Assembly (NCBI GenBank): GCA_030704615.1
Contig: CM060733.1
Span: 63,116,001-63,180,000, forward strand
Length of the DNA: 64,000 bases
Direction of reading: 5' to 3'
Source of the DNA: Takakia lepidozioides
Taxonomy: Eukaryota > Plantae > Bryophyta
The position numbers were made by a program, and so were the translations under genes. Positions within the stretch are counted from its first letter, which is position 1; every line of letters begins with the position of its first letter. This document shows, piece after piece, positions 20,371 through 64,000 of this stretch. The notes under the pieces were generated by a model. That model was not told the origin of the DNA, made no database searches, and saw only the letters and a program-made list of their open reading frames with translations.

Positions 20371-20372
20371 GC

Positions 20373-22359: not shown

Positions 22360-22689
22360 TGAGTTAATGTCAAGAAACAACAAGGCAAATGGAAAAAACG
22401 GTTAAGGATGAATTCATGGGAAATCCGTCAGGGCCAGAAAGAGACGGAAGGGTGTTTGAAATCAAACACGTGGCCGAAGGAGAGGGGCTCCCTCCATTGC
22501 ATGTACTGCAAGGGAGAGTGACATCATGCGACACGACAAAATAAGCAGCCGAAGTACCCACCCGGTACATCCGCCGCAACTAATCCAGGGAATTTAAGTG
22601 CGCAGGAAGGACAGGACAATAAATGTCTTACCCGACCACCTAAGGGGAAATGCCAAATTTGTGAACATGTTGGCTATTCGAAAGAAATG

Positions 22690-35900: not shown

Positions 35901-36288
35901 CAAAAACTAGTGAGTAAGCGAGCGAGCCGGAAAGCGACCAAGGAGTGGGGAGCTATTCCGGATTGCCATCTACCAAGGGGAATTTCCACTAGGCCCAAAT
36001 TGGTGGAGGGTTTCTTGGAAGAGTGAAGGGGGACCGTTATGTCCCGGTGAGCAGCCAAAGCTCCGAGTTGGCCCGGCGGCCAGGTTGGGAGTTAGGAGCA
36101 CGCATCAAAGCGAGTATCTATGACTTGAAGGGGAGCTTACCGAAGTGAGGTGTGCGACAATGACGAGTCTGAAATGACGAGCACCAGAATGTAACCTCTG
36201 AAGACATCCCTCCGGCAAATGGCAAAAGTGGATGGCAGTTAGGTTTTCATCCCTCCCTCTCAACGAATGACAAATCAACCAAAAACGT
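29996..36288 (+). mobile_element. Chromoviral Ty3/gypsy retrotransposon, decayed, with no recognisable gag
   Basis: LVDTGASHSF (protease), YIDDILVYS (RT), TDAS (RNaseH), integrase, chromodomain EYLVKWKGY..SW at ~34480-34570, PPT at ~34622-34640; direct repeats 29996-31228 / 35141-36288. Confidence 0.93.
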
Positions 36289-36628
36289 AATAGCCCATAA
36301 TTGGGGTTCTCGTTTTTTGGCGGGGTGCTTGCGGGCTGTCTCGCAGAGAACTCGACACCTGTTTGCCCATGCAAGACACTTAAATACAGGTATGCCACGC
36401 ATCCATATTTGACATAAGGGGTTCGACCCACAGCGTAGTTACTGAGGATGTGGCATCTGCAAAGTCGGCCGCAATTCTTGCCTGTCAGAATCTTGTGTCC
36501 GTCGGTCTGTGATCTGACATCAATGGGATAAAATTCTCCAGCATCTGTCAGAGTCAAAGCTGGCTACTAAACAACATGCAAAGTAATAATTTGCCTCAGC
36601 ACCTTCAGTCGGTGGATCCACTGAGACA

Positions 36629-39135
36629 TTGTCAGGAAGTGGTTCGCATAATTCGGCCTTCCTGGTGTTCTCTTATCACCTACTCTCCACTGCCCACACT
36701 CCCGTGCTCGTGCATGCAATGTCTCTCAACTCCGACATCGCTGTTTTCTACTCCAACGCGCAAGCGGAGTATCTGAGTGCCGTAGCCGACGGGAATGGGC
36801 TCGCCGTTGTTCAAGAAGACTTGCTTTACGTAACCTTCCGCTTTGAGGCAGGGACTGTACATGTGGTGAGAGAGGCGTATGACAAAGTGGGGAAGGTCGA
36901 GGGCACATGCGTTCAGAAACCACATTTGTCTGGCAGTCGGCGAGAGTGGAGAGTTCCACCAGCAAAGTATCACGTTCATGGGGATCAAAGACGTCTGTCG
37001 GGAGGTTCCATAGTCACACCCGGAATAGCAGCTTTGGTGGCTCAGGTGCCAAAAACTCTGCCCATCAAAAGAGAAGAAACAACCTCCACCACATTTGTTG
37101 ATATCTCCGATAGTTCAGAAGAGGACGTGTCGGAGCTCCCCCCTCCTCCAAATCAACGTCTGCTGGAGGACCCCGATGTGCAAGAGATCGCAAGTGTCAT
37201 TCCAAAGTTGCAGTCCTTGAGGGGGTTGCCAGGATGCAAGAGTGATGTGAGAGACATTGACTGGGATACACAGCGAATCATTAGAGCAAAATACCTACCC
37301 ACTGAATTTAATGGTGATATCATTTTTGAGCTGCCACCAGCGACATCCTCTGGGGGATTGGCAGGACGAATGGCGGGCATGGACAAAAAGCGCGATGGAC
37401 ATCCATGGTGCCGGACGAAAACTTCCAATATATGCAATCCGCATGGCTTGAAGTTCCGTAGATCGATTTGCGTTGGACACCTCCATTGTCCAAATGCTTC
37501 TTGCCAGCACTTCCAAATGGACGGTTCGGCAAACGAGACGGAATGGGAAGGTGTCTGTGACAACCCTTTCAAAGTAGGTTGTGCTCTTGCAAGCAACAGT
37601 ACTCTCGTTTGCAAGTTCTGTAAATTGGTCCCACAGTGCATCGCAGATTGCAATGCACGTATGTACTACGTGCTTCACATTGCAGTTACCTCACAAGGGC
37701 ATGTATCCATTTCGGCATTCATGCACATCCAGTGTCCTAAGGACAGTGCAGAGAGACTATTGATACAGTCCGTTCACTACTTGAACACGAAATTCATAGT
37801 GCTCCTGGTGCATCGCCATCAGCCATTGCTCTAGCAGCAAGCAAAGGATTCCTACAAAAGTATTTGTTTGGGGAATCACGAAATCAAATCAACGTCCTAA
37901 GGGGGGGTGCTGCCAACACATGCTTTATGGATAGCATCCTGGAGTTGAAGCGTATAAGCCGATATGACTTCATTCAGGACAGTGTTTTCCCAAGGCAAGG
38001 TGCCAGGATCTTCATAAATCCTGGATTATGTTTGATCATGTGAAATGTGTGAAGGAATGGACGACCATGGCCTGTCATGTATACGATCCTACATACCAGA
38101 GAGTGATGACTATTGTTGTTTGTGACATGGAGTCGGAGGACACAGAGTCACAAATTCTTATGTGGAAGTCCCTTGTGAACGTCATGACAGCTCATGGTGT
38201 CCCAGATCCAAACTTCACTGGGTTCATGGCTGACAGCGTTCAAGCAAATTGGAATGCTGTCCGCACTGTTTTTGGTTCAGGCAACCCCAAACTACCAACG
38301 CACTTGCCTCTTTCATTGGAGCCAGTCCCTACAACGCCACACAAAGAGTTCCATAAAACTGGAGTTGCGGAAGGAGCATATGAGACTATGCCGTCTGTAT
38401 AAAGATGCCACCTCTGAGCAGGAAGCCAACTCTATGTTCCAGACTATTCAAGCATGGTGGTACTCATCTGAGGCAGTGAGTTTGGATGGAATCAAAGAAC
38501 TAGAAGACTGGTTGGGGTTCTGGCACTTCAGATATAGACAGTGGGGTGCCTTCATGACAACTGTAAGTTAGTAGCGTAATAGCATGATTTTGTTTTATTC
38601 CTTCTCGTCGGGAGATATGTCATAGAACGAACAGGCCGTCCAATCCAATTCTTATGCTGGTGTACGTAATCATGCTTGTGTTGAATTGCATGTAGAACAT
38701 GTCACTGGAGGACATTGCCGATATGCCCTCTTGCAGTCTAGCGGAGACTGTGCATAGTAAGTAGATGTCGCAATCCGGAAAAAACGGGTGGAACCTGTAC
38801 GTTGCAACTGCAGATGACATGGTCCGGGCAGTTTTGCAACAAACAAGGTACCGGGACTTCTTGAGGGGACGGGGTGCTGGCAAAGGTCCAGACAGAGAAG
38901 AGTTGCTACTCAGGGCTGCAAATAGAGCGAAGCGTGCTGTAAATGAGTTCACAAATGGAACACCTTTGCAGTCTAGGCTCCCACATCTGGAAGGGGAGGA
39001 AAGATTTGGTTCATGCAAGCGCAAACTTGACACCCCTCCAGGATCCGCTGGTGACTCCCATCGGCATGACAGGGATAAATACTCAATTCCTCGTGTGCCT
39101 GTGCCTCCGACATTCAAATCTGGCAGTCCTGTAGT
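36629..39135 (+). mobile_element. MULE-type transposase pseudogene with an N-terminal GCM-like DNA-binding domain
   Basis: HPWCRTKTSN...FRRSICVGHLHCPN...CKFC..C (GCM/WRKY-like); MFDHVK...CDMESED...FMADSVQANWNAVRTVFG; CLFHW (CxxH); frameshifts and introns. Confidence 0.75.
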
Positions 39136-39355
39136 GGGGGGTTGCTATTCCATGAGCTCATGAGCGGGCATGGCTCACCCATGAGCCGCAAAGTAACACA
39201 CTTCGAATTTCGGCAGATTTTTTTTGGGCCCAAAACTATAAAATAATCAAAAATCGAAGATTTCCGCGCTCATGCTGGAAGCACTCCGCTCATGAGTACC
39301 AGTGTACGCTCATGACTTGGAGCCCAGGCTCATGGACCGCTAGGCCAGGTCATAG
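39136..39355 (+). mobile_element. Transposon end of the GGGGG-N-TGCTATTCC family, with catgagc subterminal repeats
   Basis: GGGGGGTTGCTATTCC; the same terminus occurs at 45816 (minus) and 47832 (plus). Confidence 0.6.
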
Positions 39356-39369
39356 AAAAACTGAATTCT

Positions 39370-39874
39370 GGGCAATAACGGCACCAAAATTATCCCAGAG
39401 GCAGAGACGCAAGCGGAATTAGGATCCGGGTTTGCAGACTCCGAAAACGCAATGGCGACCTATAACCGTGGATAGTACTGTTGCAGAAGTGCATGATGGT
39501 TGGGTATAACGGCGCCGTAATTGGGCACAGGAAAAGAAATAGCCGGCTGAAGGCTCGGGAGTGAAGCCAACAACGGTGAAAGTAATTGGGCTCCGCCAAC
39601 CAAATACCCGGCTGCATCCTCCGGAGTGCAGGCGATAACGGCGCCGAAATGGGCCCCGAAAATCAAATACTCGGTTGAAGCCACCGGAGTGCAGCCGATA
39701 ACGGCGCCGAAATTGGGTCCGGAAACCAAATACCCGGCTGAAGGCTAGGGATTGCAACCAATAACGGCGCCAAAATTGACGTGCGGAAACAAAATTCTTG
39801 GCTGAAGCTTCCGCACTCCATCCAATAACGGCGCCAAAATTGGGCTCCGGAGAGCAAATACCCGCCTTACGGTA
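39370..39874. repeat. Array of ataacGGCGCCgaaattggg units (~63-bp period) ending in a TA-flanked CCGTAAGGCGGG TIR-like end
   Basis: Units near 39376, 39507, 39636, 39699, 39761 and 39826; cccgccttacgg-ta at 39861-39874. Confidence 0.75.
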
Positions 39875-39914
39875 AGGGAGGCCTTGCTCTCATTTTGCTC
39901 TTCACTCTTCTCTG

Positions 39915-40397
39915 TTGTGCCCATCTCCTCCCTGCTTTGAGTTCGTGCTATGTCGTGAGGCCATGTCGTGCCCGAATCACATCTATCGACGCCAGACGGG
40001 AGTCATTTTCCCGAAAGCAGACGACATCATTGTTTTCCTGGATGTTTATAGGGACGATCCTCGACTTGTCCAGCTGAGAGCAATGGAGTTTCTTCCAGGA
40101 TTGCACGATTCTCCTGGACCCCGGCTGGGGAGCAGGTGGTTCCTACGCATCATGGACCTGGACTTTCCGCATGAGTGGGAGCCGAACAGATCACGCACAG
40201 CGTTGCTGTATCGCTGGAATTGTTGCGAGTGGACGTATGATGAGTGCACAGGTGAAAACTTTACGCGTGGACGGACTGGCTCGGAAAGTGGGGACATTCT
40301 CTTCAGTTATGAGGATGAGGAGGAGGGGAACACATGGCCCACTGTGACGGAGATGTTTGATAGTCCATGTTTGGGAGAGAGCCTCACGCATATATAG
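39915..40397 (+). other. Orphan ORF of unknown function
   Basis: About 150 aa open frame with protein-like composition; no motif recognised. Confidence 0.25.
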
Positions 40398-41624
40398 ATT
40401 GAGAGGTCTTGTACCTGGAGAAGTAAATTGTGTTACCATGGGTGGCGGTTGACATGGGGAAGTCTGTTGAGATTGCTGGTCTTGAGCAACAAAGGGCCTT
40501 TGGAGTTTGTGTGGCTGATCCTGCTAGACAGTGGGTTGCCACTTGAAGTTGGGAGGCCATCTGGGACATAACAGCTGTACATCAGAGAGTGATAACAATA
40601 CATTGTATGCAATGCGAAGTACTTTTATCAAGGAGGAGGGGAGTAGCCAAGACTGGGGAGAGGGGTGAGTGTGCTTCCTGAGAATAAATGGACATTGAGA
40701 TGATTGGGGACGAAGGTGGAGCCGCCACTGCTGCCACTGCTAGGGCTCCGGAGTATTCCTACTGGCAGCTGCCTTCCTGATGCTGTTGTGCTGGTGCTGA
40801 TGATGCATTGAGGCACGGGCAGGGACGGAAATTCAGCGGGAAGACATGTGAGTGGAGGGAGTGGTGGGCGAGCTGGGAAGGTTGAGAGGCCAACAGTTAG
40901 GGGTGGCGCCGTCCTCAGGGCAATGCTGCCTGGAAGAGAGAGTCGCTCGAGCATGAGAGTAGCTTTTGAAGTCCCAAACATAAGACAAAGTGTTGTTTGC
41001 TGCGACACTATGGCTCTTCATAAAGCAAAAATACTCGGACTGTTGTCTCGCATGAGCTGTGTTATGGAGCCTTTGCAGCAGGAAGTTACTAATGGCTGCA
41101 ATCCTATCATGTTTCCTAAAGCACTTGACATGCTTCTCTGATGGGGTATGCCGAAGGTTGAGATCAAGGTGGAGAGGGTTGACGTCAAAAATGGGAGGAG
41201 GCAAAAAGGTTTGCATTGTGCTTGGAATGAATACAGCCACTTACAGCAGCATTGCAGCTGGGGGAGCGGGGGTGGAGTCTCCTCAGCTGTCTATGCTGGA
41301 GCACCGGGATGATAGTGTTGGCAGCTGCAGCTTGACGTGAAACGTTCATGCTCTTCCATCACAGTCTCTACTTCATTATCACGATAGTTCTTTTGTTGAT
41401 CCCTCTCCTTCATGCTGGCTGCGGGCGCCCTTTTGTACTCCCTCTTTTATCAACACAACACTTACAAGCTGTTGATGATGCCCAGTGTCTCCCCTACCTA
41501 ACTTATGCCCTCTCATACTACTACACACCAAGATTTTGCGCTCAGATCTCTCTGTTGACCCCCCCGCTCCCCTCCTGACAATAAATCTCTCTCCACACCT
41601 ACACTACCATCACACACCCCACCA

Positions 41625-43040
41625 CGTCCGCTGTAAATGCATATATTGGTACAAATTTCTTTTCAGATCATTTTTTTATCTTAAGGCAGACAGTTTAGGC
41701 ATTGTATTGCCAAAGCAGGGCAGTTTGCGAGTTATCTGGGAATCGCTGGTAAATCACGTAGGAACTTGGATCATGTCTGAGATGACCATGGAGAAGCTCT
41801 GGCGTCAAAATTTGAAACAATATATGACGACTGTTCCAGTCCCGGATTGCGATCTCTCTATTATCCTGCCTTTCAAGTCCAGTAGGAGCACACGGTGAGG
41901 AGTCTTGGCAATTGGAGGAAACAATCTGTATAGCGATGAACTATCGCGACAAAGCAAGTGCTGCATCAGAGCAAACGACGGATGAATGAGCTTCTCGACG
42001 AAGTTTTGAACTCCTCAGTGATGCAAAGTGTGTAGGAGGGAACTCCAGAAGATCTGTGACCCAGTGGCAGGGCCAAAGACCCCCTGGGGCACCACCAGTA
42101 TTTTTACTGCCACGAAGCGACAGACTGCCTATATGGCGAAACCATGGAAACCAGCAAAAGGTATGGTTTTTCTTCCCCTCCCCTGAGAATTTATAAGCAG
42201 CTACAATGCATCTAATTATAATTGGTCACCAAGTTTGGTGATTTTGGAGGTGATGAAAGACAACATCAAATTATCAAGCTAGAGGCAGTTGCGAAGGGCG
42301 ATTAAATGGAATTCTAGCTCATCCAATGGATGAAAAATGGAAATTCGACCTGCAAGCTGGATGGATGAAAAAACAACCTAGCGCCAACTGGTCATCCATT
42401 GGATGGATGAAGAAACCACATTTATCATTATCTCCAAGGTTTTCCATCCATGGTTATTATTTTATGGTGTTCTATCGTTTTTAAATTATAGACTCATGTA
42501 GAAAATAATAGTTTAAGACTATCCTTCACTAGTTTAAGAGCCCCAAAAACACAATAAAAGAAGAGCAAGCTCTTCTTGTTCTTCATCTAGACTCATTTCT
42601 TTGCTTTGGTCTCTTGCTTGTGTAGTTAGTTTTGAGCTTGAGAGAGCTAGATCCTAGAGGGTTGAGCTTGTGGCTTTCTAATAGTAGAAGTAGAAGCAAG
42701 CATGGTGAGAGCGGGATAGTCCTAGCTCAAGGCCTTGTGGCTATGTGAGGCAAGAAGTAGAGGAAACGCTCCATGAGGTGGGAGACTTGAGGACGAGTAG
42801 GAGGCCGGAGGAGGACCAGATTTGAGTACCATTCTACCGAGCGATTTAGTGCATCCTGAGCACCACTTGTTTCAGAGGGTGACTTACCATATTATCTTGA
42901 CCTTTGAATTCAATTATTCCATTTGTTGTTTAAGCTTGTCCCAAGAAGGGACCTTATAGCTTTGCTTGCTAGAAATTTATAAAAACTAACCCTCTTTCAA
43001 AGAGGATATGTGTGAATCTTGATGTGCATGTGTGAAGAGC
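41625..43040 (+). mobile_element. LTR-like repeat (second family); further pieces at 21530-22359 and 47412-47560
   Basis: Repeated elsewhere in the window, non-coding, with LTR-like composition; no TSD found. Confidence 0.55.
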
Positions 43041-43146
43041 ACAGGTATGAAGCCCCAAGAGACAGGGCCTTAGGAATCTAACCCAATTACGTCATGGAAG
43101 TGAGGGTAGATGTCCATTATTCAGTTTAAGGAGAGGGCGAGGTTGC

Positions 43147-44445
43147 AGAGAGAGAGAGAGAGAAGACTCCGGCCGTAGCCGGCGTAACTAAGAGCCACTT
43201 CGCCTTACGGCTACTGCCCCCTTTCGGAGGTGGGCCCTATAAAAGGAAGGGCGTCCTGTGGGACACCAGGTAACCAAGGAGAGAGAGAGGGGGGAGGGTT
43301 GCTATGAAACCCTAAGTTCCCAGGGTGCACTAGGAGGGCTAGCTTCAAGTTGGCGTTTGTTGGTGATGATGGCTGTAAGGGAACGAAGTGCTGTAAGATG
43401 GATTGCTTTGAAACATTGATGAATTGGGAGAATGGGTATTTTGAAGTTATCATGTAAATCATTGATACTGGCGTTGTGTATGCCGCTTCGGGTTCCGGCA
43501 GTAATGACTGTGAGTGGGCCAGTCTTCCATCCCTGCCGACGAATTACAAGAATGAGTGGGGCGTATTATTGTCGCTTTTCCAGGATTGAATCGTGGGGGT
43601 ATCGATCATGGCAGAATGTAAACTCGATAAAGAGGATGATGAGCTGTGGGGATGGTGAGGTAGGTGGCGAGGCTGTAACGGGTAGCCCCTGGATAATGAG
43701 TATGTCCGGGCAGAGCCGGGCGGGGCATGAGCAGGGTATTCGGGTACAGGTACATGGTAAAAGCCATGGAGGCACAGTGTGGTCTAGTGGTCTCCCTTGG
43801 AAGGTACCGACGTTAATGATTGTGAACCATCGGGTTTCGGCGCGTTGTGTGAATAGTTTGTGGAGATGCCAGACTGCTTGGTTGTGGCGGGTGATATGAA
43901 TACCATGGATGACCGGATGCGTGCATTGGCTCAGGAGGTGCGGCCAGGTATCACGTGCATTGTGGGTTGTGGAGCACAATGGGCAGTAAGGTGATGGAAA
44001 GAGATGTGGCCAGAAAATATGTTTGCGTTGGTGACCCATGTATTGGGCGTATCTGAATTTAAGTGTCTGGCGTATTTGTGCATCAGTGGTAGCTTTGGTT
44101 TGCCAGAAGTGGTTCGAGAGTTTGTGGTGTAATACCTCGGATTGAGTCCATTTTTGAATATGCACTTTGGTATGACTAATAGAGGCTGCGGCCTGTTCGT
44201 TTGCTTCACGGGTGAGGGTGGCCAAGAGATTGGGTGTGGGTCGTGGTGCGATAGGGTTCGGAACTGGGTGTAAAAACCAAAAGGGGTAGGAGTGGGCGAT
44301 GTGGATAGGGTCGTTTGTGGGGTTGACTTTGAGTTTGGTGGCACCGAGCTGAGCGAGGAGGTCGGCCTCCTCATTCCCTTGAATGCCAGTGTGCGAGCGT
44401 CTTTGAGTAGGTGTACTGGATGCTTTATAGAAACGGCAGCGTTGA
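43147..44445 (-). mobile_element. 3' part of a Dualen/RandI-like non-LTR retrotransposon (RNase H - CCHC - restriction-like endonuclease) with a (CT)n tail
   Basis: SHTGIQGNEEADLLA (RNase H); CPLC..DTWPHLLSQC..RHNQAV; PDILII..IEFTFC (RLE); (GA)n on + at 43147-43166. Confidence 0.8.
43169..43238 (-). ncRNA. Structured RNA element in the LINE 3' UTR
   Basis: CUCC-GAAA-GGGG, GC-AGUA-GCC-GUAA-GGC-GAA-GU and CCGGC-UACG-GCCGG stem-loops. Confidence 0.55.
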
Positions 44446-45816
44446 CACCGGTGTTATTGATACAGGGGAGACGTCCGACAAAGAGCTGGACTCCGACTTT
44501 GCCTGTGAGTAAATTCAACCTGTGGATGCTTGCATTATTGTTTCAATACCCATAATCACTGTTCTTAAGGCAAAGTGCACATGGGAGACATCATCTTTGT
44601 TGTTTCCGGCTCAGCCGTCTTTTGCACTGGATGCAGGCAGGCACATAACTGCTTCACACCTGTTTTAACAACTGTTCTTCAAGGACTCTTTAACTGTCTG
44701 TCAGGTATTTGATAAACGAAATCCACGGAAGTCGTGGGCCTCTCCACTTTTGAGCTCCGTCTAGCTCGGAATTATTGTGCATTGCATCATTGTATTCAAA
44801 ATGGGTTTTTCTCGACTTGTGCAGGAGTCCATGTGCTTCCACTGACCCTCCAGGACTATGACACCTTTTTGGACTTCTTTCAAGTCCTCCTCAGTCTTAT
44901 ATGCTGCCCGTCTATGCGGAGGCACTCGTAGCAAGCATGTCCGTTCATGGCACTCGCAGTCCAACCATCGACGGCCGTGGTAGAAGACGTGGTGTTGGGG
45001 CCAGAATCTTTGTGGATGACATAACACAGGAGGTCGATTGTGACCCTGTAAGCATCGTTCAGCCACACTGTTGCAAACTCCCTTCACATCCTCGATGCAC
45101 CCACATTTCGCATACATGTCCACGAGGGTGATATTGCAAATTGCAAAAACAAACAAACGTGATGGGTTGGGCAGTACATTCTCGCATCATTTGCTCGTAG
45201 GTCTCCAAACCTTTCCTGCCAGAACAATGCTTGGTAAATTCTGCCAGCATTAAAGTCCACATGATCAAAGATCGTTCAGGCATCTTTTTGAACACATGAT
45301 GAGCATCCATGATGCTCCCACACTTACCATACATGTTCGCAAGGGCGGTGAGTAAGAAAATATTTCGCAGGGATCCGCTTTGGATGATGTGAGTGTGTAC
45401 CTGCTTTTCGGGCCTTTTATCCTGATGAACTAAAGCAAAAGACAAACATACGTATGTGGATATGCTGCAATGCCTCCTTGGTTCAAAATTAGAAGAGCCT
45501 CTTCTAGTCTGTCTGCCTCACGAAGCATCTTCACATGCCAAGAATGGGTGCCGACAAGCTGTGTTCACGACGTAGCCACATCCCTATGCAAGGGCTTGGT
45601 ATGTTAATAACGTCTAAATGGATGCAATGGATAGAAATGATGGATACAATGGATGTAACACATCCAGTCTGCATTGCCTGGAAAGGGCGGATCAACCCGC
45701 GGTAATAAACCCTGCATGTTTGCTCCGGCATGCTGACGTGGCGTGAGCCTGTGCTGGGCTCATGGGCTCCTGGGCTCACAGGCTCATGCCTCCAGGCTCA
45801 AGGAATAGCAGCCCCC
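44446..45816 (+). mobile_element. Right end of an MTase-carrying DNA transposon: MTase C-terminal tip, antisense PLS-PPR fragments, gagccc repeats, GGAATAGCAGCCCCC terminus
   Basis: Inverted homolog of 47832-48835; ..ETSDKELDSDFACE* at 44447-44512; PPR text LTALANMYGKCGSIMDAHHVFKKMPER..W on the minus strand at 45059-45400. Confidence 0.75.
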
Positions 45817-45879
45817 ACATAGAGAAGTGTAACTAGGTGAATCATGTTTTCAAAGAGGTAAGGTGATGGTGGTAATTGG

Positions 45880-46400
45880 TATTTGGAATGGTGATAGTTG
45901 GGGGTTGGGAAGCAGGCCATCCAACACCACATTTTGTAGAGTAAGTACCATGGGGTAGGCCAGATGTTTTGACAGGGTGGGAAGCATGAGATAAAGAGCC
46001 CATGGGGTGGGAAGAGTTTGCATTTTTGAACATGTACGTATACTGATCTAGGTAGGGAGTGGCAGCTGGATTGGTGGTGGATGGGGGCTGGAGAGCAGGT
46101 CAACCTGCACCCTGTTTTGTTATGTAAGTACCACGGAGTAGACCAGCAGTTATGAGAAGATAGAGAACATGAGATAGAAGTCCAACAGGGTGGGAAGAAT
46201 CTGCATTTGTTGACATGTTTGCGTTTTGAACAAAGCAAGAGGGGCAACTGAATTGGAGATGGTTGGGGGCTGGAGAGCAGGCCACCCAACACCCCATTTG
46301 GTTATGTAAGTAACATGGAGTAGACTAGATGTTTTGACAAGACAGAGAGCGTGAGATAGAGATCCCACGGAGTGGGAAGAATCTGCAATTTTTGATATGA
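45880..46400. repeat. Three degenerate 180-bp tandem repeats
   Basis: ggggctggagagcagg...gtaagtaccaYgg...gggtgggaaga blocks near 45900, 46080 and 46260. Confidence 0.75.
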
Positions 46401-46465
46401 TTGTATACTGAACAAGGTAAGGAGTGACTGCACCATTGGCATGACCATGGGGGTCCTCCACATCT

Positions 46466-47411
46466 TGTTATTGCCTGGGCCATGGGTGATTTTTGGTGAC
46501 AGTAGATGGAGGTTAATTTTGCGCAGACTTACGGATAGTAGACTCAGACCAACAAAGGCCTTAGGGGTGACAGACATAAGCCTTAGGGGTGACAGGCACA
46601 GACCTTAGGGGTGGTAGGCAGGCTCACACAGTCAGTCACGGGTTTACACAGCTTATCACAGTCAGTCACAGCCTGACACAACCTTACATAGCTTGTCACA
46701 GCCCGACACAGCCAGCCACAGTCCGACACAGCCTGTCACAGCTCGGCACAGTCACAGCCCGACACAGCTTGGCACAGCCCGTCACAGCGTATACAGCGTT
46801 ATCATTGGCAGGGAACGACTATGTGGAACGAGATCTGCAGAGGGAACGTGCATTCTGTCTTGGATGACAGTTAGTTAGTTAGGCAGTTAGAACAACTTGC
46901 AGGTAGAATAGGCAGAGTAGCGACATGGAGGGGGACACTTCTGGGGGGAGATCACTTCTTGGACGTCACTTCTTAGAGAGCACGATCGTGGAGCATAGGG
47001 ATGGAGATTACGACGAGATGATGTTTGATTCATGCAAGCTGTAGAGATGCACTGTAGAGCAGGTTAGAGACACCATGGCTTCGGCCTGATACATGATAGA
47101 TATTAATATGATTCCTATTTCATATTCACACCGTGTAGAGAGACATATGAGTGAAGCTGTGGAATGAATGCTTGAGTAGTTGGAACATGGTAGATTGCAA
47201 AAGCAATCTGATACTTAATCATAGACAATAAGGTAAATTGCTAACATGAATGCGAGAAGGTATACAAATAGGAAGCACCCCCATGATACACTAGTTGTAG
47301 GTCATGACTAATTGTTCTGAACGGGCTGAGTGCTTAGAGATTTCCAACTCTTTTATCTTGGAGTTTCCACCTCGGATAGCTAAGGGATGGGTGAGTAAGA
47401 GCCGCTCGACA
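46466..47411 (+). mobile_element. Isolated LTR of the CACAGC-repeat family
   Basis: TG...gccgctcgaCA with an internal cacagc array; no matching TSD (CATCT vs GCAAG). Confidence 0.8.
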
Positions 47412-47831
47412 GCAAGATGAAGAACTAGATGAAGAGCAAGAGAAGCCTTGCTCCTCTTTTATACTGTTTTTGAGCCAAATAAACTAATAAAAAATATTCA
47501 TTAAATTATTGTTTCCTTGGGGGATCTATAATATAATATTCAACATGGATGAAAAGTCTTAGAGGCTCTTTGGCTTGGAGGGGTGCAGTGAGGATGTTTT
47601 GTGATAAGAATGGAAATTTGTTAGTGATAGCGTCAAGTTCTTGTATGTTTGTAGATGCGTCGGCTAAATGCTCACTTAATATTTTGTGGATTGTGCCGGG
47701 TTTGGTTTGTAGTAAATGTAGAGATTTGTGAAGGTTATGCAGGACATGTGGGGGTGCTAGGTAGTTGTGGGGGTGTGTGGGTAGGTTGCGTAATTTTTGT
47801 AGAAGTGAGCGTATTTGTGTGTCTAGTGCCA

Positions 47832-48770
47832 GGGGGGGGTGCTATTCCGTGAGCCCGGAGGCACGAGCCTGTGAGCCCAGCACAGGCTCACGCCACGTCA
47901 GCATGCATGCAGGGCCTATTTCCGCGGGTGTCACCGCGGGTTGATCAGCCCTTTCCAGGGAATGCAGACTGGATGTGTTACATCCATTGTATCCATCCTT
48001 TCTATCCATTGCATCCAATTAGATGTTATTAACATACCAAGCCCTTGCATGGGAATGTGGCTACGTCGTGAGCAGGTGCACACTCACATCATCCAAAGCG
48101 GATCTCTGCGAAATGTTTTCTTACTCACCACCCTTGCGAACCTGTATGGTATGTGCGGGAGCATCATGGATGCTCACCAGAAGAATGCCTGAACAATCTT
48201 TGATCACGTGGACTTTAATGTGATGGATTTACCAAGCATTCTTCTGGCAGGAATGGTTTGGAGACCAACGAGCAAGTGATGCGAGAATGCACTGCCCAAA
48301 CCAAAGACGTTTGTTTGTTTTTGCAATGCACACAAGCCTGTGAGCTCCGGAAAACACTAAAGAGATTGAATGAACAATCCGGGCAGTCCATGCAACCCCC
48401 ATCTCCAACGATAGTTTGTTCCCAGGAATTTGCATCCCACGCACACATTGCAAACAGGACACCACGTCTTCTACCACGGCCGTCGATGGTTGGACTGCGA
48501 GTGCCATGTACGGACATGCTTGCTGCGAGTGCCTCCGCATAGACGGGTAGCATGTAACTGAGGAGGACTTGAAAGAAGTCCAAAAATGTGTGATAGCCCT
48601 GGAGGGTCAGTGGAAGCACACGGACTCCTGCACAAGTCGACAAAAATCCATTTTGAATACAATGATGCAATGCACAAGTCCAACGAAGAGGATGTCTCCC
48701 ATGTGCACTTTGCCTTAAGAACAATGATTCTGGGTATTGAAACAACAATGCAAGCATCCACAGGTTGAAC
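47832..48770 (-). mobile_element. Second copy of the MTase-carrying transposon end with PPR fragments
   Basis: GGGGGGGGTGCTATTCC at 47832; PPR fragment on + at ~48070-48330. Confidence 0.75.
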
Positions 48771-50130
48771 TTACTCACAGGCAAAGTCGGAGTCCAGTTC
48801 CTTGTTGGACGTCTCCCTTGTATCAATATCACCGGGAAGGGGCATCGGAAGGACTTGAGAAGTTTGTCCACCCAAACCCATCAGGAGGTTCTTGTAAATT
48901 TCGGCATCCCCTTCAATCCCGAAGAGATGTCGCGCACTGGCCTTGATGTCGCGCACTAGCCTTGCAAGCGTGGTATGAAGCACCTGCAATGGAATAGAAG
49001 GAAGGAAACAGACATTGAAGACTCATTTGGAACGGTGGGAAGTGCTGAAAGTGCAAGCTCAAACAAACCCGATCAAATGTGAATGTTGAAGAGACGAACC
49101 TGTGCCCATTGACAAATCCAGAACTCTGGCGTCGGTGTAGGTGCAGCACTCCACAATCGTTTGAATGAAAACCGGGCTCCTCTCCCTGGCCCCTCTCCAA
49201 GGAATTACCCCATTCGCCGTTCGCCTCTCCCTGGCCCCTCTCCAAGGAATTACCCCATTCGCCGTTCGCAAACACACGTTGTTGTCCACGTAGTTGTGGT
49301 GCATGTCATCCATGGGAGGATCTGTCCTCTCGTCTATGAACTTGCCCCCATGAGTGATGACAAACTCCCTAATGATGGCTGGAGTCGTAGGTGGATGCAC
49401 TCGGACGAGACAAACAGCTTCAAACAGACGAGTCTGCGAACAGGACATCCACAAAGAACTAAGAAGTTGAAAACCAGGCCCCTCCATATTCATTTGAGCG
49501 ACTTATGCAACTCCATCCGAGAACCACCAAGAAGAGGAATAAGAAGCAGATTTACCATCTCTCCCGGACGATCCCCCTTCGTCAGGTACATGCTGTTCAC
49601 ACAATTCCATGTCTTCACGACCCTCATATCGGAGGCTTTCAAATAGCTGGCAAGTGCATTGCGACAGCGAAGGTCGATGGACTGGATGAGCACCAAAACA
49701 CCTGCATCGGACAGAAAGAAATTGCAAAAGGAGAAAACCCACTGCCAGTAGCGCTCATCAAAAGCATTCCAACCTGGACAAGCACCCGTGGAGGGACATC
49801 CGGGACTGGCAACCCATCAGGGATGTCCAAGATGATGAATATGACTTCTCTTCCCGTTCACCCAGGATCTGGTCATTTTAGCCTGCAAACAAGCATGCAA
49901 TGGAATGCTCAAGAGGATTGAAACGAGCCATGCCCACAACACACAAGAAGCAAAAGACAACACGCACCGTGCTGAGGAACTCCACAATCCTCTCCCACAC
50001 TGGTGATGGATCGCCTTTGTAATCAGATTTCTTGGACTCCATCATGGCAAGGAACCCGACATTGGCCATCTCCAACCTGATAGGGCGAATGACCCTCGTG
50101 GGATGCTCCACTGCATGGTACGGGTCCTTA
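48771..50130 (-). pseudogene. Beta-class amino DNA methyltransferase-like gene, copy 2 (exons ~50130-49970, 49882-49556, 49433-49100, 48983-48771)
   Basis: VIFIILDIPDG..PGWNAFDERYW..FLSDAGVLV..TWNCVN | ..PWRGARERSPVFIQTIVECCT..RVLDLSMGT|GASYHACKASARHLFGIEGDAEIY; motif IV precedes motif I; frameshifts plus 45-bp and 19-bp duplications. Confidence 0.8.
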
Positions 50131-50684
50131 GGATCAACCACCCCTTATCCTACCCCCTTCCTTTCCCACACCCCACAATAGTAACATCTTTTCTGTTTCC
50201 CATTGCCTTTCGACTATACCTTTACCCCCGGGTATCCTGACGGAGGCTCTTCTCTGCCAGTTTCCTCAAATTTCTATCATGAACTTGAGGTTGGAGCTGC
50301 GGTGGTGGCTGCTACACTCTCATTCTCCTCTCCTCAAAGACCTCCTGCACTGGATCTCAGAAACAAGGCAATCCAAATACCAACCACAGGCAGAAAGATG
50401 GTCTGGGGCCCCAGTCCTGCAAGATCCCCGTAGTAAACATGGTCTGGTTGCGCAGCAGGAACAATCCACAGGTCCACGAAATGAGGATGTTTTGTCCAAG
50501 CAATTCTCTGCCATGAGAACATACTTATGTACCTACAGGCACAGAGGCAGCCTCATTAGTGTTATTTTCTTGACCCATAGTCTGTGATATGATGATTGTG
50601 TGAGATGACGTGAGTAGAAAATGGGAGATAAGTATATACGATGTGGTAAGTAACAACGTATAAGGTAATTGTCATGGTAAATGT

Positions 50685-51737
50685 TGTTCGAGCGGCTTTT
50701 TACCCACCTCCCTTCGCTATCCGAGGTGGAAACTCCAAGATAGAAAAGTTGGATATCTCTAAGCACTCAGCCCGCTCAGTACAATCATCATGACCTGCAG
50801 CTGTGAATCATGGTTGTGTTCCCCTTTGTATTCCTTCTTGCCTCATGTTAACAATTTTACCTTATCTGATACGAGCTAGCATCAGTTTGCTTCAGTATCT
50901 TCTTAGTTCCAGTTAATCATGCATTCCTTTCACAGCTTCACTCATGTCTCTCTACACAGTGTGCTTGTATCGAATATTTTCCGATTACATTTAGCTCAGT
51001 CTAGGCCAATGTCAAGTGGACTCTAATCAATCCACCTATAGTATCACTCTACAGTTCTGCATGAAGTAAACATCTACTGTTCATCTCTCCCTCCGACTCC
51101 TCTCCGTGCTCTCGGTCTTCGTGCTCTCTCCCGCCTATCTATCTCCTCTCCTCCATGACCATCCACACGCTCCCCACCCCGTGACGTGTCCTTCTTCCGT
51201 TGCCCCCGCTCTCCTTATCTGCCCCCCCAGCTGTTCTAACCACCTAACTAATTAACCGTTATCCCCGAAGTATCACGTTCCTTCGGCAGATGTCGTTCCT
51301 TCACAGTCGTTCCCTACCATTGATAACTGTTCCCCATGTACTGTGACAGGCTGTGTCAAGCTGTGCCGAGCTGTGACTGGCTGTGTCGGCTGTGTTGGCT
51401 GTGACCAGGCTGTGGCGGCCGTGCAAAGCTGTGTCAGCTGTGTCGGCTTGTGATTGGCTGTGACGGGCTGTGACAGGCTTTGTGGCGGCCGTGCGAAGCT
51501 GTGTCAGGCTGTGTCGGCTGTGATTGCTGTGACGGACTGTGTCGGCTGTGCAAAGTTGTGTCAGGCTGTGTCGGCTGTGATTGGCTGTGACGGACTGTGT
51601 CGGGCTGTGTAACCCCCCCCTAAAGTGCGCTGCTGTCACCCCTAAGGCGCTCCGGTTTGGTCTCAGTCTGCGCAAAAATTAAGGGAACCCCCACCAGAAC
51701 CCGTAAAAGCGTCTAATTCCCAAGCAACCCTCTAACA
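50685..51737 (-). mobile_element. 3' LTR of a Tat/Ogre-like Ty3/gypsy element
   Basis: TGTTAG...CA ends; polypurine tract (gagaggggggatgggtaaa) at 51738-51757; flank AATGT at 50680-50684. Confidence 0.9.
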
Positions 51738-56451: not shown

Positions 56452-59400
56452 TTAATGGTTTGTAACATGGCTTGTGTTGTTATCATACATCTTTTGTATG
56501 ACATAAGGTCCTTTCCATGGTGATTTAAGCTTAGAAGCTTTAATCTTCCCCTTCTTCTGCAACCAGAGAACCAAATCTCCCGTCTTAAAAGTCTTTAATT
56601 TGCCTTCATCAAACTGTTCCTTCCTCTTCATCTGAATTCTGGTCATGTTATCAGCTGCATCAGCTTGTACTTCTTCCACATGGTATAATTCATGTTTCCT
56701 GACCTTAATTGAATCTTCCAATTCTATTCTCTTTCCCCATTCCGTTCTCATGGTAGGTAACAAGAATTCCACTGGAAGTAAAACTTCCATGTCATACACT
56801 AATTGGAATGGTGTATACTTAGTGGTGACTTTATATGAAGTCCTGTATGACCACAAAGCTGTCAGCAACTTTGTATCCCATCCGTTCTGTTTGCATTGAC
56901 TATCTTAGCCAAGATAGTACATAGTATTTTGTTGTAGCCTCTGCTTGCCCATTACCTTGTGGGTAATACGTTGTACTCTTCCTATGCACAATCATGAATT
57001 CTTTAGTCAATAGTTCAATGGTCTCATTAATGAAGTGACTTCCCTGGTCACTGATAAATTCCAAGGGACAGCCAAATCGTGTAAGTATGTTCTCATACAG
57101 GAACCTTGCTGTGGACCTGGCTGTGTTGTCCCTCAAAGCTTTAGCTTCCACCCACTTCGTAGTATAATCAGTGGCTGTAATTATATACTTGTTCTGTGTA
57201 TTCTTGGCCGGTGGGTTAATTGGTCCAACAAAGTCTAGTCCCCATTTCTGAAATGGTTCAGTAGGCATCGTAGGATGCAAAGCTATCTTCCCAGATCTCT
57301 GCAAAGGTCCTAGCCTCTGACATTCATCACAACTCTGACAATACTTGTGTACATCCTTGAACAAAGTAGGCCACCAGTAACCTGCAAGTAGTATCTTCCT
57401 ACTGGTAGTCTCTTCTCCAAAATGTCCTCCAACCACTTGTCGCACGACTTTTACTCACCCATCCCTTCGCTATTCGAGGCGGAAACCCCAAGATAGAAGA
57501 GTTGGAAATCTCTAAGTACTCAGCCCGCGCAGAACAATCAGTCATGACCTACAGCTAGTGTATCATGGGGGTGTTTCCTATTTGTTTCCCTTTTGGCATT
57601 CATGTTAACTACCTTACCATTGATAATTAAGTATCAGTTTGCTTTATCAATCTATTGGATTCCGTCAACTCATCCATTCATTCCACAGCTTCACTCAGAT
57701 CTCTCTACACAGTGTGATTGTATCGTAAAAGTATCCGATTATGATTTATTAGGTATCAGGCCGAAGCCATTGTGTCTCTAATCTGCTCTACAATATCATT
57801 ACAGCCTTGCATATAACAAGCATCTACTCATCATCTCTCTATCTTCACTTCCGTTCTTCATCTCTGCCCCATCCCCTCTCCTCCATCACCAAGAAGTCCT
57901 CCTCCCAATCATATATATATCCCCCAAATTCCCCGTTTCTCCCTTTATCTTCTTATCCGTGGTTCTAACCGTTTCCCTCACTAACCGTCGTCTGTGAACT
58001 AACATGTTCCCTTCGCAGGTGTTGTTCCCCACAGTCGTTCCCTGTCCTACTCTTCGTTCCCTATGATCGTGACAGCTGTGTCAAGCTGTGACTGGCTGTG
58101 TGAAACTGTGATGGGCTGTGACTGGCTGTGCGACTGTGTTTGGCTGTGTCGGGCTGTGCCGGGCTGTGTCGGCTGTGACGACTGTGACGGGCTTTGTTTG
58201 GCTGTGTCAGCTGTGTCTGCTGTGACGACTGTGACGGGCTGTGTTGGCTGTATCGGCTGTGTCTGCTGTGACGGGCTGTGTTGGCTGTGTCTGCTGTGAC
58301 GACTGTGACGGGCTGTGTAACCCCCCTCTACAGTGCGCTGCTGTCACCCCTAAGGCTCCTGTTGGTCTCAGTCTGTGCAAAAATTAAGGGTACCCTACAG
58401 ATCCCGTATAAGTGTCTAAGTCCCCGACAGTCCTCTAACACCACTCCTTTATGAACTTCCTCCAAAACTTTATTTACTTCATGGTGGTACAAGCATCGTT
58501 TAAGTACTCCATCAGGTCCTAGCTTATACATTCTGCCCCCTACCATAGTATAAGGTAAAGCCTTGATAACGATTCTCTTCCTCTGCTCCTTACCATAACT
58601 AGGTGGGCACTGACCATGAGTAAGGTAGTAACTGATTGGCCACTGCCAATCTAACCATTCATCTGCACTTCCTTGCACCTCCATTGCAAATAAACTCGCA
58701 TCAGGTAATTGGTCGTCTACTCATGTGGCGGCCTCTCCTGTTGTTAGGCGTGACAAATGATCTGCCACAAGATGCAAACGGCCAGGCTTATAAACAACTT
58801 CGAACTCAAACTCGTGCAAAATTATTAACCACCTCGCTATCCTTCCACTTATCAAAGGTTTGTTCACCAGATATATCAGAGCCTGGTGATCCACATAAAA
58901 CATAAACTTTCTTCCCAATAGGTAATGTCTGAATTTCTGACTGCATAAATCATTGCCAGTGCTTCTCTTTCAGTTGTGCTATAGTTCCTTTCAGCACTGT
59001 TCATCAACCTGCTAGCATAGTACACAGGTGAATCTATATTTCCTGTAACATTTTGGGCTAACACCGCTCCCAACGCTTCTCCTGAGGCATCACAGTGAAC
59101 ATGAAATACTACATGCCAGTGAGGGTTAATCAGCATAGGTGTAGTTGTTACTGACAATGTAAGTTCCTCAAAAGCCTGTTGACATTCAGCTGTCCATGCA
59201 AACACTGCATCTTTCTTCAGAAGCTTGCTCAATGGTGCTGCTATCTGTGCATACCTTTTGACAAATCTTCTGTAATAACTGGTTTGTCCAAGGAATCACC
59301 TTAGACTCTTAACATTTACTGGTGGTGGTGAGGCTTTAATGGCCTCTGTCTTCCTGGGATCCACAAGAAGTCCCCTCTTACACACAATGTGTCCCAGAAG

Positions 59401-59830
59401 CACCCCTGAATTCACATAGAAAGTACACTTATCTAGATTCAGGCCCAGACCTCTCATTCTGCATCTGACCAAACATAACTCCAATTTATGCAAGTGCTCA
59501 TTCTTAGAGCTGTACACACTGAAATCATCCAAGAACACCTGCATGAAATCATCCAGATACTCATGAAAAGATTCATTTATCACTCTCTGAAAGGTTGCTG
59601 GTGCATTACAAAGTCCAAAAGGCATGACTTTGTATGCATAAGCACCCCAGTCTGTGATGAAAGCCGTCTTTCCCTGGTCTTCTTCTGCCACTTGCACTTG
59701 ATTATAACCACTGAAGCCATCCATGAATGAGTACATCTCATGGCCTGCCACAGTGTCCAATACCGCTTCTGTGAATGACAAAGGAAAAGGATCTTTCTTC
59801 GTGCAAGCATTCAACTTCTTATAGTTCACA
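56452..59830 (-). mobile_element. Tat/Ogre-like pol (RT-RNaseH-integrase), interrupted by a solo LTR
   Basis: MDGFSGYNQ, MPFGLCNAP, FLDD, HCDAS, GGHFG..AGYWWP, WGLDFVGP, SDQGSHF, WKGPY. Confidence 0.95.
57438..58440 (-). mobile_element. Solo LTR with a 5-bp TSD (CCACT)
   Basis: CCACT at 57433-57437 and 58441-58445; TG..CA ends; splits the integrase zinc finger (EVHKGV|VGGHFG). Confidence 0.95.
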
Positions 59831-61447
59831 TGAGAAAGAGCTCCTGTGAATGAGGGCCCAGTGGTGGCAGCTCACATGGTTAGGCCATGTGTTGTACCAG
59901 AAGTAAGTACAATGATAGTAACGAGAAGCAAAGCCAAACTAATACCTCCAGTAGTTGAGGAAGATGATGAAAATGAAGATGGCAGTGATGTGCCTGAAGA
60001 TGATGAGGCTTGGAGAGATGAGAATGAACTGCACAAGGAAGTGGCAGATACCATAAGGGAAATGCAGAAGAGTACTCATATTCCTATGACAGATTCCTCT
60101 GATTCTGATGGAGAAGAAGAAGTGAGTGAGAATGAAAGGAAGAAAGAAGCTGCAGACATGCAGAGTAATGAAGGGACTTTGGCTGAAGTAATATGCCAGA
60201 CCAAAGCAGAGATTACCATTGGACAGCTATTGGCTGTGGCACCTTATTGTAGACACAGGCTGTATCAAGCAATCAATCGAATTGCCCATGTGACAGAAAA
60301 CACAGACCTGAACAGCAAGGTGACCAGTTATAATGTGAAGCCGGAAGGGCGAGAAGCAGTCATGGACTTTGATGATTCTATGCCAGTAATCCAATTGAGA
60401 ATTGGAAGCACAGAACTAACTGATGTACTGATAGATGGAGGCTCTGGAGTGAATATCATGGCAGACCTATTAAGGCAGAAGCTTGGTCTAAATAACATGA
60501 AACCAGCCCCATTTACAGTAACAATGGCAGATCAAAGAAGTGTACAGCCATTGGGATTGATAAGAGGAGTTAAGATACAGATACAAAAGATGATCTTTAT
60601 GATCACAGTAATTGTGTTGAAGATGGATGAAGTCATGGAGGCTTACTCCTTATTATTGGGACGTCCGTGGCTGAAACAAGCCAGGGTATTCCATGACTGG
60701 AATTCTCAGTTACTAACTGTGCATAATGGGATGCACAAGATACAAATTACCACTAAGAAATCTAGTAGATTACCTGCTACAAGAAGACCTCGAGGGGTCA
60801 GGGAGTATGACTGGAGGGGAGGACTGGATGAGGAACATGAAGCTACTCTATTCGCTGCACACCCAGAGTGGGAGCAGGTTGCAGAGATGCAGCAGGAAGG
60901 CCTAAGTTGTTTAAAAGGTATCTGTTGTGGTGTAGTGACAGCAACACCAATTGAAGGTGAAATAAGCAGTTACCCACCACATTTTTATGAAGAAAGAGAA
61001 GGAGAAATGGAAATCCTAGAGGAACCAGCCACTGTGAGTTTACAGGATGAAGTGGTGACTGGTTGGACAATCACAGCTGATGAGCAGGTGAGAGAAGTGA
61101 ATGTGGGAACTGAAGAGGAACCGAGGATGGTGAAGGTAGGGGCTGATTTGGAGCCAGAATTCTTTGAAGAAGCTAAGAGTTTGTTCATCAAATACAGAGA
61201 TGTATTTGCTTGGAGCTACGAGGATCTAAAAGGGATACCACTTGAGATCTGTCAGCATAAGATTGAACTGGAACCAGGGTCAGTACCAATCAAACAGGCA
61301 AGGTACAGAATGAATCCCAACTATGCACAGAAGGTTGGAGAAGAGATCAAGAAGTTGGCTGAGGCTAAGTTTATATACCCAATAGAGTATACAACTTGGT
61401 TGTCACCCATTGAGATAGTTCCCAAGAAGAATGGTAAATTGAGAGTC
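59831..61447 (+). mobile_element. Inverted internal segment of the same element (gag end - protease - RT start)
   Basis: VLIDGGSGVNI, LLGRPWL, ...WLSPIEIVPKKNGKLRV, which joins VNYKKLN on the minus strand at 59829. Confidence 0.9.
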
Positions 61448-61870
61448 TAATCCAGAATGAACAGGCTGCCTTGTGATGTCCTGACTGATTACAATAGTAA
61501 CACAGTTCTTCACCATTGGGTCCTCGCCCTTGGTCTGCTCTAGGATTATTTCTGTGATTCCCTGGCTGGTAATTCCCCCTTGGATTATCCTGATAGTTGG
61601 CCCTGGAATTTCCTTGGTAATTCCCTCTTGGATTACCTCTCCCTTCCATACCATTGTTATAACCACCAGGCCTACCATAGTGGTCCTGATCACTGTTTCT
61701 TCTTGGCTGGGGCTGCACTTGATGCACCCTTACTTGCCTAGGTTCTCTAGCTGCTGTCCTTCTGTTGTAGTAACAATTCTCAGTAGAATGGTTATCCATT
61801 TTACAGATAGTACAATGTTTCTCCTTCATGTGGCATTCAGTGGTGGTATGGCCTTCATTCTGGCACTTTG
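61448..61870 (-). mobile_element. gag nucleocapsid fragment with two CCHC knuckles
   Basis: CTICKMDNHSTENC and CYYCNQSGHHKAAC. Confidence 0.85.
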
Positions 61871-63756: not shown

Positions 63757-64000
63757 GGTTGAGCGGCTTTTACTCACCCATCCCTTAGCTATCCGAGGTG
63801 GAAACTCCAAGATAGAGTTGGAAATCTCTAAGCACTCAGCCCACTCAGAACAATTAGTCATGACCTACAACTAGTGTATCATGGGGGTGCTTTCTTATAT
63901 CTAATCCTTCTTACATTCATGTTTAGTAAGTTACCTTACTGCCTAGGTTTAAGTATCAGATTGCATCTGCAATCTACCATGTTCCATCTACTTGAGCATT
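63757..64000 (-). mobile_element. End of another LTR of the same family (runs off the window)
   Basis: gagcggcttttactcacccatcccttagctatccgagg... matches the reverse complement of 47150-47410. Confidence 0.85.

Follow-up and report, generated by a model that had tools for sequence, protein, structure and literature searches.

The locus considered here, positions 47829-50687 of a 64-kb stretch of Takakia lepidozioides DNA (contig CM060733.1; the whole stretch is termed the window), raises the question why a gene resembling a DNA methyltransferase (MTase) ends about 1 kb from a G-rich, repeated terminus, and what kind of element carries it. Very probably, these 2.9 kb are one end of a decayed DNA transposon of the cut-and-paste type (probably a Mutator-like one), with the remains of an accessory MTase-like gene.

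The window is eukaryotic land-plant DNA rich in transposable elements, with PLS-type pentatricopeptide repeat (PPR) fragments, gypsy and other long terminal repeat (LTR) elements, and GT..AG introns. The 3' two-thirds of a spliced gene of the beta-class amino-methyltransferase type are found on its minus strand at 48771-50485. This gene remnant (copy 2; copy 1 is at 20604-21512, plus strand) sits within a nest of transposon fragments, and the element fragment that holds it is termed copy B.

Homology searches and alignments were run exon by exon. A full-library search with exon 3 of copy 2 returned nine matches, six of which are real relatives (P0002-P0007); the other three (P0001, P0008, P0009) are repeat-protein artefacts, probably from a tandem duplication in the query. 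The six relatives are pieces of eukaryotic contigs called as open reading frames (ORFs), and every one stops at the same ..TG exon border. The whole gene is present on contigs L001 and L002, and part of it on L003, L004 and L005. A further contig, L020, is an extension of L017 and was reached via the transposase described below, not via exon 3.

The gene remnant and the transposon end

The gene model of copy 2 was derived by comparison of the minus-strand translation of 48700-50700 with the relatives:

48771-48984, minus strand: exon 4, the last of the MTase-like gene; end of motif I and motifs II-III (GASYHACKASARH / RHLFGIEGDAEIY); stop codon at 48771-48773
48985-49099, minus strand: phase 1 intron, GT..AG; splits the last Gly codon of motif I, at a position common to all relatives
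49100-49433, minus strand: exon 3; motif X together with the beginning of motif I (PWRGARERSPVFIQTIVECC..VLDLSMGTG)
49434-49555, minus strand: intron; donor GTAAAT at 49555
49556-49860 (start approximate), minus strand: exon 2; motif IV DIPDG at 49813-49827, through WNCVN..GEM
49964 to about 50485, minus strand: what is left of the long middle exon; the conserved motif HLxxCxWYLD lies at 50371-50400
50685-51737, plus strand: LTR belonging to repeat family R, by which copy 2 has lost its 5' part; five R copies have one common sharp end

Copy 2 is a dead, 5'-truncated and multiply broken pseudogene, because it carries frameshifts, a stop and duplications, and has no upstream exons further right. 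Exon 2 reads ..IILDIPDGLPVPDVP and then, past a 1-nt frameshift near 49785-49795 that separates DIPDG..PDVP from GWNAF, GWNAFDERYWQW..LSDAGVLVL..WNCVN..GEM. Exon 3 contains a perfect in-frame 45-bp tandem duplication (49179-49269), and in exon 4 a 19-bp tandem duplication (48926-48964) shifts the frame, so that 'GAS..AC' and 'RHLFGIEGD' stand in two frames. The middle exon is interrupted by a stop in frame (50145-50147), and its reading frame shifts near 50400. Homology to the relatives ends at about 50485, the LTR starts at about 50685, and no upstream (ParB-like or middle) exons of copy 2 were found right of the LTR in the window. Of the transposon of copy 2, only the end is preserved.

The terminal region and its counterparts in the window are as follows:

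47829-47940, plus strand: left terminal region of copy B; TAGTGCCA, a G8 run, TGCTATTCC, three RTGAGC/GCTCAY repeats and an imperfect hairpin (GTGAGCC..GGCTCAC)
47941-48770, plus strand: captured PLS-class PPR fragment, then the 3' untranslated tail of the accessory gene; degraded, converging on the MTase-like gene, and 86-95% identical to copy A
44448-45821, minus strand: copy A, an inverted second stop-to-terminus block; terminus ..GGAATAGCAGCCCCC at 45802-45816; inner side cut abruptly at 44447
39132-39879, plus strand: third, more distant end, with TAGTG, a run of six G and TTGCTATTCC; RTGAGC occurs nine times within 200 bp

In a pattern search, the tip (G-run followed by TGCTATTCC) was found three times in the window within three mismatches, against 0.01 occurrences expected. 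The homology of copies A and B begins sharply at the G-run and TGCTATTCC, and the outer flanks are unrelated. At the third end the tip match is at 39136, the DNA inside differs from that of copies A and B, and a tandem array at 39506-39879 is composed of units with ACGGCGCCG-type palindromes. The RTGAGC/GCTCAY repeat occurs 9, 4 and 4 times per 200 bp at the three ends (window mean, 0.24), and nowhere else in the 64 kb is it as dense.

The same end was found in another data set. On contig L005 the stop of the MTase-like gene is at about 985 and the terminal region at 1760-1840, i.e. about 0.85 kb past the stop; it contains the exact 19-mer TGCTGACGTGGCGTGAGCC (47885-47903, minus strand, in copy B) and a perfect GTGAGCCTGG/CCAGGCTCAC palindrome, followed by ..GCATTCCCCC. 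Outside this end there is unrelated DNA with a reverse-transcriptase gene, and the filling of about 770 bp between stop and end is unrelated to the block in the window. A conserved end of about 100 bp thus stands 0.85-1.3 kb past the gene stop in copies A, B and L005. Judged from these comparisons, a transposon does end at the G-run/TGCTATTCC boundary, as the sequence-only reading had proposed from copy 2 and its neighbourhood.

Copy A contains the last 21 codons and the stop of the MTase-like gene (44450-44512, plus strand), then the PPR fragment and the terminus. Aligned in inverted orientation, 47834-48835 and 45816-44448 are about 89% identical overall; BLAST breaks the match into four pieces (83-95% identity), and three indels of about 95-170 bp interrupt it. 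The block had been said to recur at 44446-45816; it does recur (44448-45816), in inverted and not in direct orientation. It had also gone unnoticed in that reading that the block is mostly a PPR pseudogene fragment, and that copy 2, whose motifs had been described correctly, is a 5'-truncated pseudogene. The ORF at 45059-45445 of copy A matches Pfam PPR (E 7.5e-6), and the PPR-block ORFs of copy B itself are too degraded for a Pfam match. Because the PPR fragment lies inside the conserved end, between terminal region and interior, in both A and B and is absent from the same place in L005, it appears to be a subfamily-specific acquisition in the manner of Pack-MULEs (MULE, Mutator-like element). 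A high copy number of the MTase-bearing family, suggested earlier from three traces in 64 kb, is plausible in view of the three ends.

Matches of TGCTATTCC in contig L006 lack the G-run and were rejected as chance. When metagenome contigs were scanned for the conserved 19-mer, no relatives emerged, and the eight matches, all in high-GC bacterial DNA, were dismissed as chance. About 85 bp outside the copy B terminus, a partial look-alike of the terminal motif (GGGGGTGCTAGG..) at 47745-47785 may be chance or a remnant of some other end. Directly outside the copy A terminus there is a 182-bp tandem repeat (2.9 copies, 45889-46415), and the cut of copy A at 44447 is abutted by a 219-aa ORF (43566-44225, minus strand), with a Cys/His pattern like that of the C-terminal zinc-binding part of non-LTR retrotransposons and no Pfam match.

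Co-occurring transposase and class of the carrier

The window contains a transposase fragment, and the complete accessory gene is represented on contig L020:

36854-39097 of the window, plus strand: transposase fragment, probably Mutator-like; Cys/His-rich N-terminal domain and CLFHW (CxxH) motif; matches L006 (P0021 and a second ORF)
8025-7516 of L020, minus strand: ParB-like part
7414-4121 of L020, minus strand: middle exons
2881-2555 of L020, minus strand: DIPEG exon
2404-2123 of L020, minus strand: exon 3
2030-1821 of L020, minus strand: exon 4, to the stop

In the L006 transposase, CLFHW (CxxH) and, in the C-terminal part, a SWIM-like C.C..C.H motif were read by eye. The fragment in the window stops about 35 bp before the 39132 terminus, without the C-terminal part of about 350 residues that includes the SWIM-like motif; the element at 39132 looks as if it had been inserted into this transposase, and the missing part does not resume after 45821. 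The nearest neighbours of the transposase in the language-model feature space of the ESM-Atlas are MULE/SWIM clusters (0.86-0.92). On these neighbours and the motifs read by eye, a Mutator-like transposase is probable rather than proven.

The upstream exons of the relatives (L001, L002, L020) carry a ..F.V.DGNHR.. motif on the same strand as the MTase-like exons. Contigs L016, L017 and L018 were chosen solely for their transposase, and each has ParB-like exons upstream on the opposite strand. On L020, the complete accessory gene is on the minus strand (8025 down to 1821), head-to-head with the transposase on the plus strand from 14063. The gene is thus found inside a transposon, opposite in strand to the transposase, as a whole on L020 and with its ParB part on L016 and L018. 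Because of this arrangement on L020 and L016-L018, the probably Mutator-like transposase is the probable partner of the MTase-like gene. Taken together with the conserved end past the stop in A, B and L005, it bears out the earlier view of the MTase as passenger of a DNA transposon; of the two transposase types that had been put forward for it, CACTA or GCM-MULE, the Mutator-like one and not CACTA is the type seen with the gene, a classification that is probable rather than proven.

Several observations weigh against the reading as one end of a probably Mutator-like transposon with a ParB-like/MTase-like gene. No target-site duplication was found around 39132/45821 or 47829, and no matching opposite end for copy B within the window or for the candidate element 39132-45821; the inverted end motifs at 39132 and 45821 share RTGAGC repeats and have no flanking duplication. 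Pfam recognised no member of the transposase family (window ORFs, P0021-23, and the ORFs of L006, L017 and L020). Contig L019, which extends L018, has the ParB part without MTase exons after it, and another transposase copy follows. The support for ParB consists of a PHROG ParB match at E 0.2 and the DGNHR motif; neither Pfam nor a PDB profile search found ParB in the upstream exons, and the fold model was poor (mean pLDDT, the predicted local distance difference test, 54.7), with nothing below E 0.9 in Foldseek. No single exon reached the gathering score of the Pfam MTase family PF01555 (best, 23.0 bits for exon 3 of L020, E 9e-5; cut-off, 26.7 bits).

The ends also begin with TAGTG, which fits a hAT-type tip as well. 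An element that is real and belongs to another superfamily (hAT-like or CACTA/Plavaka-like), with the Mutator-like transposase merely nearby in the transposon nest, is unlikely. The tips, which read TAGTG.. and TATGTG.., fit the hAT YARNG tip; the two kinds of end share just about 20-60 bp, not the long terminal inverted repeats (TIRs) of the MULE type; the transposase of the window lies outside the element that starts at 39132; and the homologous accessory genes of red algae ride on Plavaka, Zisupton and Mutator elements alike (bioRxiv 10.1101/2025.02.11.637652). On the other hand, the gene and this very transposase family stand head-to-head on single contigs, which come from two samples (L020, L016, L018), no hAT or CACTA transposase was seen beside any copy, and the feature-space neighbours of the transposase are MULE/SWIM families.

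Copies A and B are 2 kb apart and inverted, with their shared boundaries facing each other, and could represent one local duplication and not two insertions; the 47834/45816 boundary would then be the breakpoint of an inverted duplication of a host region (PPR pseudogene and tail of the MTase-like gene), which the lack of target-site duplications at the A and B ends would also suit. This explanation is most improbable, since the gene and the end are conserved on L005 and the filling between them is variable: the same end of about 100 bp recurs there, equally far from the same gene, with other flanks and no PPR block. Furthermore, the third end motif, at 39132, stands in otherwise unrelated DNA and is accompanied by subterminal repeats of its own. 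A conserved gene and end with a variable filling are expected of a transposon whose terminal cis-sequences are functional, and not of a local duplication.

In public assemblies, close relatives of the transposase (50-70% identity) make up at least 150 clusters, formed at 90% identity (P0021-P0141; L006, L016-L020), none with a Pfam domain or name, and some on contigs larger than 1 Mb. This is probably a divergent Mutator-like family overlooked by annotation pipelines, and such a very abundant family, invisible to Pfam, will continue to be missed by them. Another copy of the family is represented in the window by a SWIM-like C-terminal part at 1141-1457 (plus strand). Past the stop of the accessory gene, positions 1-1800 of L020 consist of tandem units of about 300 bp with long inverted repeats (GTTGTATGTAGGCATGCC..GCTTAGCTACATACAAC), and the contig ends before any terminus.

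Methyltransferase homology, catalytic loop and selection

Hhalign was used to compare the exon alignments with YhdJ of E. coli, which is a genuine enzyme of the beta class. The exon 2 alignment (A6) matches YhdJ residues 33-102 (P 0.0019), with SVDLVIADIPEG over SVDLIFADPPYN and DIPEG over DPPY; the exon 3 alignment (A7) matches residues 197-224 (P 0.0042), and the exon 4 alignment (A5) residues 230-256 (P 1.3e-4). Exon 3 of L020 matches PF01555 (N6_N4_Mtase) at profile positions 160-200; weak matches to the same family were obtained for exon 3 of L001 (positions 148-188) and exon 4 of L002 (189-212), and the latter exon also weakly matches four PHROG DNA methyltransferase families. Successive exons thus follow the permuted beta-class order on YhdJ and PF01555, with motifs IV-VIII first, then X, I and II-III. 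The beta-class order (IV ... X-I-II) is real because the exons match YhdJ in order, and PF01555 and the PHROG methyltransferase families besides. The motif pieces that had been assigned earlier to a second MTase copy were all recovered in place on the minus strand, with the exons in order on YhdJ.

Negative results were also obtained: single exons of copy 2 had no Pfam match even at E 10, nor had the 302-aa ORF of copy 1; a word search with copy 1 gave no match, an ESM-Atlas search with exon 3 no usable match, and the exon 3 alignment, run as a profile against the PDB, only an irrelevant match. Chance look-alikes in ORF pieces that do not derive from a methyltransferase, which these failed searches and the absence of a catalytic DPPY motif might suggest, can scarcely be credited against three independent, in-order hhalign matches to YhdJ exactly at motifs IV, X-I and I-II, the PF01555 match of the L020 exon at E 9e-5, and repeated weak matches solely to DNA methyltransferase families.

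The Gly-rich motif I, for binding of S-adenosylmethionine, is kept as VLDLSMGTG|GAS in copy 2, VDLTVGTG|GST in L002 and LDCTAATG|GSS in L020, each split by the conserved intron. Motif IV was compared in five lineages (copy 1, copy 2, L005, L002/L003 and L020), and the catalytic pattern (D/N/S)PP(Y/F/W) is present in none: all five have DIP[D/E]G, as DIPDG in copy 1, copy 2 and L005 and as DIPEG in L002/L003 and L020, aligned exactly over DPPY of YhdJ. Because DPPY is conservedly replaced in this way, ordinary amino-methyl transfer cannot be assumed for the MTase-like domain.

An intron after W.C.N is at the equivalent place in copy 1 (donor GTAAGT at 21411, following the DIPDG exon at 21132-21410, plus strand), copy 2 (GTAAAT at 49555) and L005, in agreement with the equivalent intron position noted earlier for the two window copies. 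By its sequences, the MTase-like gene represents a real gene family with fixed introns. Copy 1 is 25-29% identical to the pieces of copy 2 (28% over the same compared segment), and copy 2 is 59% (exon 2) and 48% (exon 3) identical to L005; the earlier notion of diversified subfamilies is thus well founded.

Between copy 2 and L005, over 207 codons that were counted separately for each exon, pN is 0.34 and pS 0.73; dS is saturated, and dN/dS comes to about 0.16. From this ratio it follows that both lineages were under purifying selection for most of their history, though neither copy is intact today. This is not what a single host gene decaying neutrally would give, the alternative named in the earlier reading. 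The L002 and L003 sequences differ at too few sites to inform on selection.

Copy 1 is rearranged: its middle and DIPDG exons are on the plus strand (18455-21410), the ParB-like exons (DGNHR) on the minus strand downstream (23540-23979), and it lacks the motif X-I exons. An unclassified repeat (21540-22361 and 41623-42370, inverted, 74-81% identical) has one copy just past the DIPDG exon of copy 1 and the other inside the candidate element 39132-45821.

Known systems, a possible role of the intact element, and neighbouring repeats

ParB+MTase proteins of algal transposons have been described and proposed to bind, and to modify, the element that encodes them (PMC12477816). The accessory gene of Ectocarpus Sola1 in that report is alike in that one gene has a ParB-like and a prokaryote-type N4C/N6A methyltransferase domain, lies within a large DNA transposon and is transcribed from the strand opposite the transposase. 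In contrast, the host here is a land plant, the carrier is probably Mutator-like, motif IV is DIP[D/E]G in every lineage seen, and copy 2 is a truncated pseudogene; the likeness is one of description, not of sequence comparison. Since ParB+MTase accessory genes are already published for algal transposons, copy 2 is a new example, not a new kind.

In red-algal Plavaka elements, PAG2 combines an N6-adenine methylase with SET, and PAG3 combines ParB with a 2-oxoglutarate (2OG) oxygenase (bioRxiv 10.1101/2025.02.11.637652). As here, ParB-type and adenine-methylase-type cargo of giant DNA transposons occurs with inverted-repeat tandem arrays, and the cassette moves between superfamilies; unlike here, where the two domains are fused together, they are in separate genes fused to other enzymes, and the carrier superfamily differs. 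The same work describes inverted-repeat arrays beside the ParB-type accessory genes, and these are matched by the GGCGCC arrays of the window. In the window, 17 of the 22 GGCGCC sites are in three tandem arrays of palindromic units, each beside a member of the transposon family:

55-420: a 20-bp perfect palindrome repeated six times
19709-20293: inside copy 1
39511-39830: just inside the third terminus

On L001, similar palindromes occur in repeats upstream of the gene (89 and 579).

VANDAL elements with VANC, as far as the preprint that cites them describes the system (bioRxiv 10.1101/2025.02.11.637652), would be comparable in that a Mutator-type element has an accessory protein that recognises its own sequence and changes the epigenetic state; the proteins are unrelated, and a function of this kind would hold here by analogy. 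Pack-MULEs (PMC6431247) share the host gene fragment, here a PPR fragment between terminal region and interior common to copies A and B; the classic ones are short and non-autonomous with long TIRs, in contrast to the large element here with its own accessory gene. The bacterial beta-class amino-methyltransferases (PF01555, E. coli YhdJ) share the permuted order, with IV first and X-I-II at the C-terminus, and their ..P..F.Q..IE.C..PG..V.D....G.G....A....GR...G.E.D... region aligns, whereas the gene here is a spliced eukaryotic one with DIP[D/E]G for DPPY, and none of its exons alone attains the gathering score.

The land-plant case is characterized by fixed introns, a conserved gene-to-end distance, purifying selection and a uniformly altered catalytic loop. 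Four points are added here: how the gene-proximal end is built, that this end is conserved in another data set, that a PPR fragment was captured, and a confirmation, obtained independently, of both the linkage to the transposase and the DIP[D/E]G loop. The dead copy 2 matters as an anatomical specimen only, which defines the end and shows the capture of the PPR fragment. To our knowledge, the ParB+methyltransferase cargo genes of algal transposons have never been tested, and with the family as material one can ask if proteins of this kind methylate their own element or do no more than bind it.

Intact relatives measure at least 16 kb; in them, the transposase gene and a long, spliced accessory gene stand head-to-head. 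The accessory gene encodes a ParB-like part at the N-terminus and an amino-methyltransferase-like domain of the beta class at the C-terminus, separated by a long and variable middle, and its 3' end points toward one transposon end about 1 kb off. In copy B, the terminal cis-region of about 100 bp, the PPR fragment of the subfamily and the MTase-like half have survived, the ParB half having been removed by the LTR; copy A (44448-45821) is an inverted sister fragment of the same subfamily, and 39132 the end of a more distant relative. The ParB-like part would recognise the element's own tandem arrays of GGCGCC-centred palindromes, and the MTase-like domain would mark or merely occupy the array DNA, helping against host silencing or in transposition. 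The sequences show the structure and homology of the gene, the transposon end, the linkage of the gene to this end and to the transposase, purifying selection and the decay of copy 2; DNA binding, its target and methyl transfer are what we infer for the intact protein.

As a bolder proposal, made tentatively and rather doubtful, land plants may hold widespread, unannotated, large Mutator-like transposons in which the ParB-like/MTase-like DIP[D/E]G fusion is a self-recognition module acting on the element's own GGCGCC arrays. It might be a partition-like or anti-silencing device, with a chemistry, or else a purely structural role, undescribed for any transposon.

Other repeats in the neighbourhood were also characterized. 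Repeat family R was considered as TIR of the element and rejected, as it is an LTR (TG..CA, 5-bp duplication). The R copy at 57438-58440 is a solo LTR (TG..CA, 5-bp duplication CCACT) within a gypsy integrase gene, and the interrupted gypsy element, which is rearranged, spans 56452-61829. Family R carries a CTGTGACAGG-type microsatellite array, and further copies are at 46580-47411, 61870-62502 and 63758-64000. An LTR retrotransposon at 29996-36289, with 1.2-kb direct repeats (29996-31227 and 35140-36289; 90-93% identical), is placed between the ParB-like exons of copy 1 and the transposase fragment.

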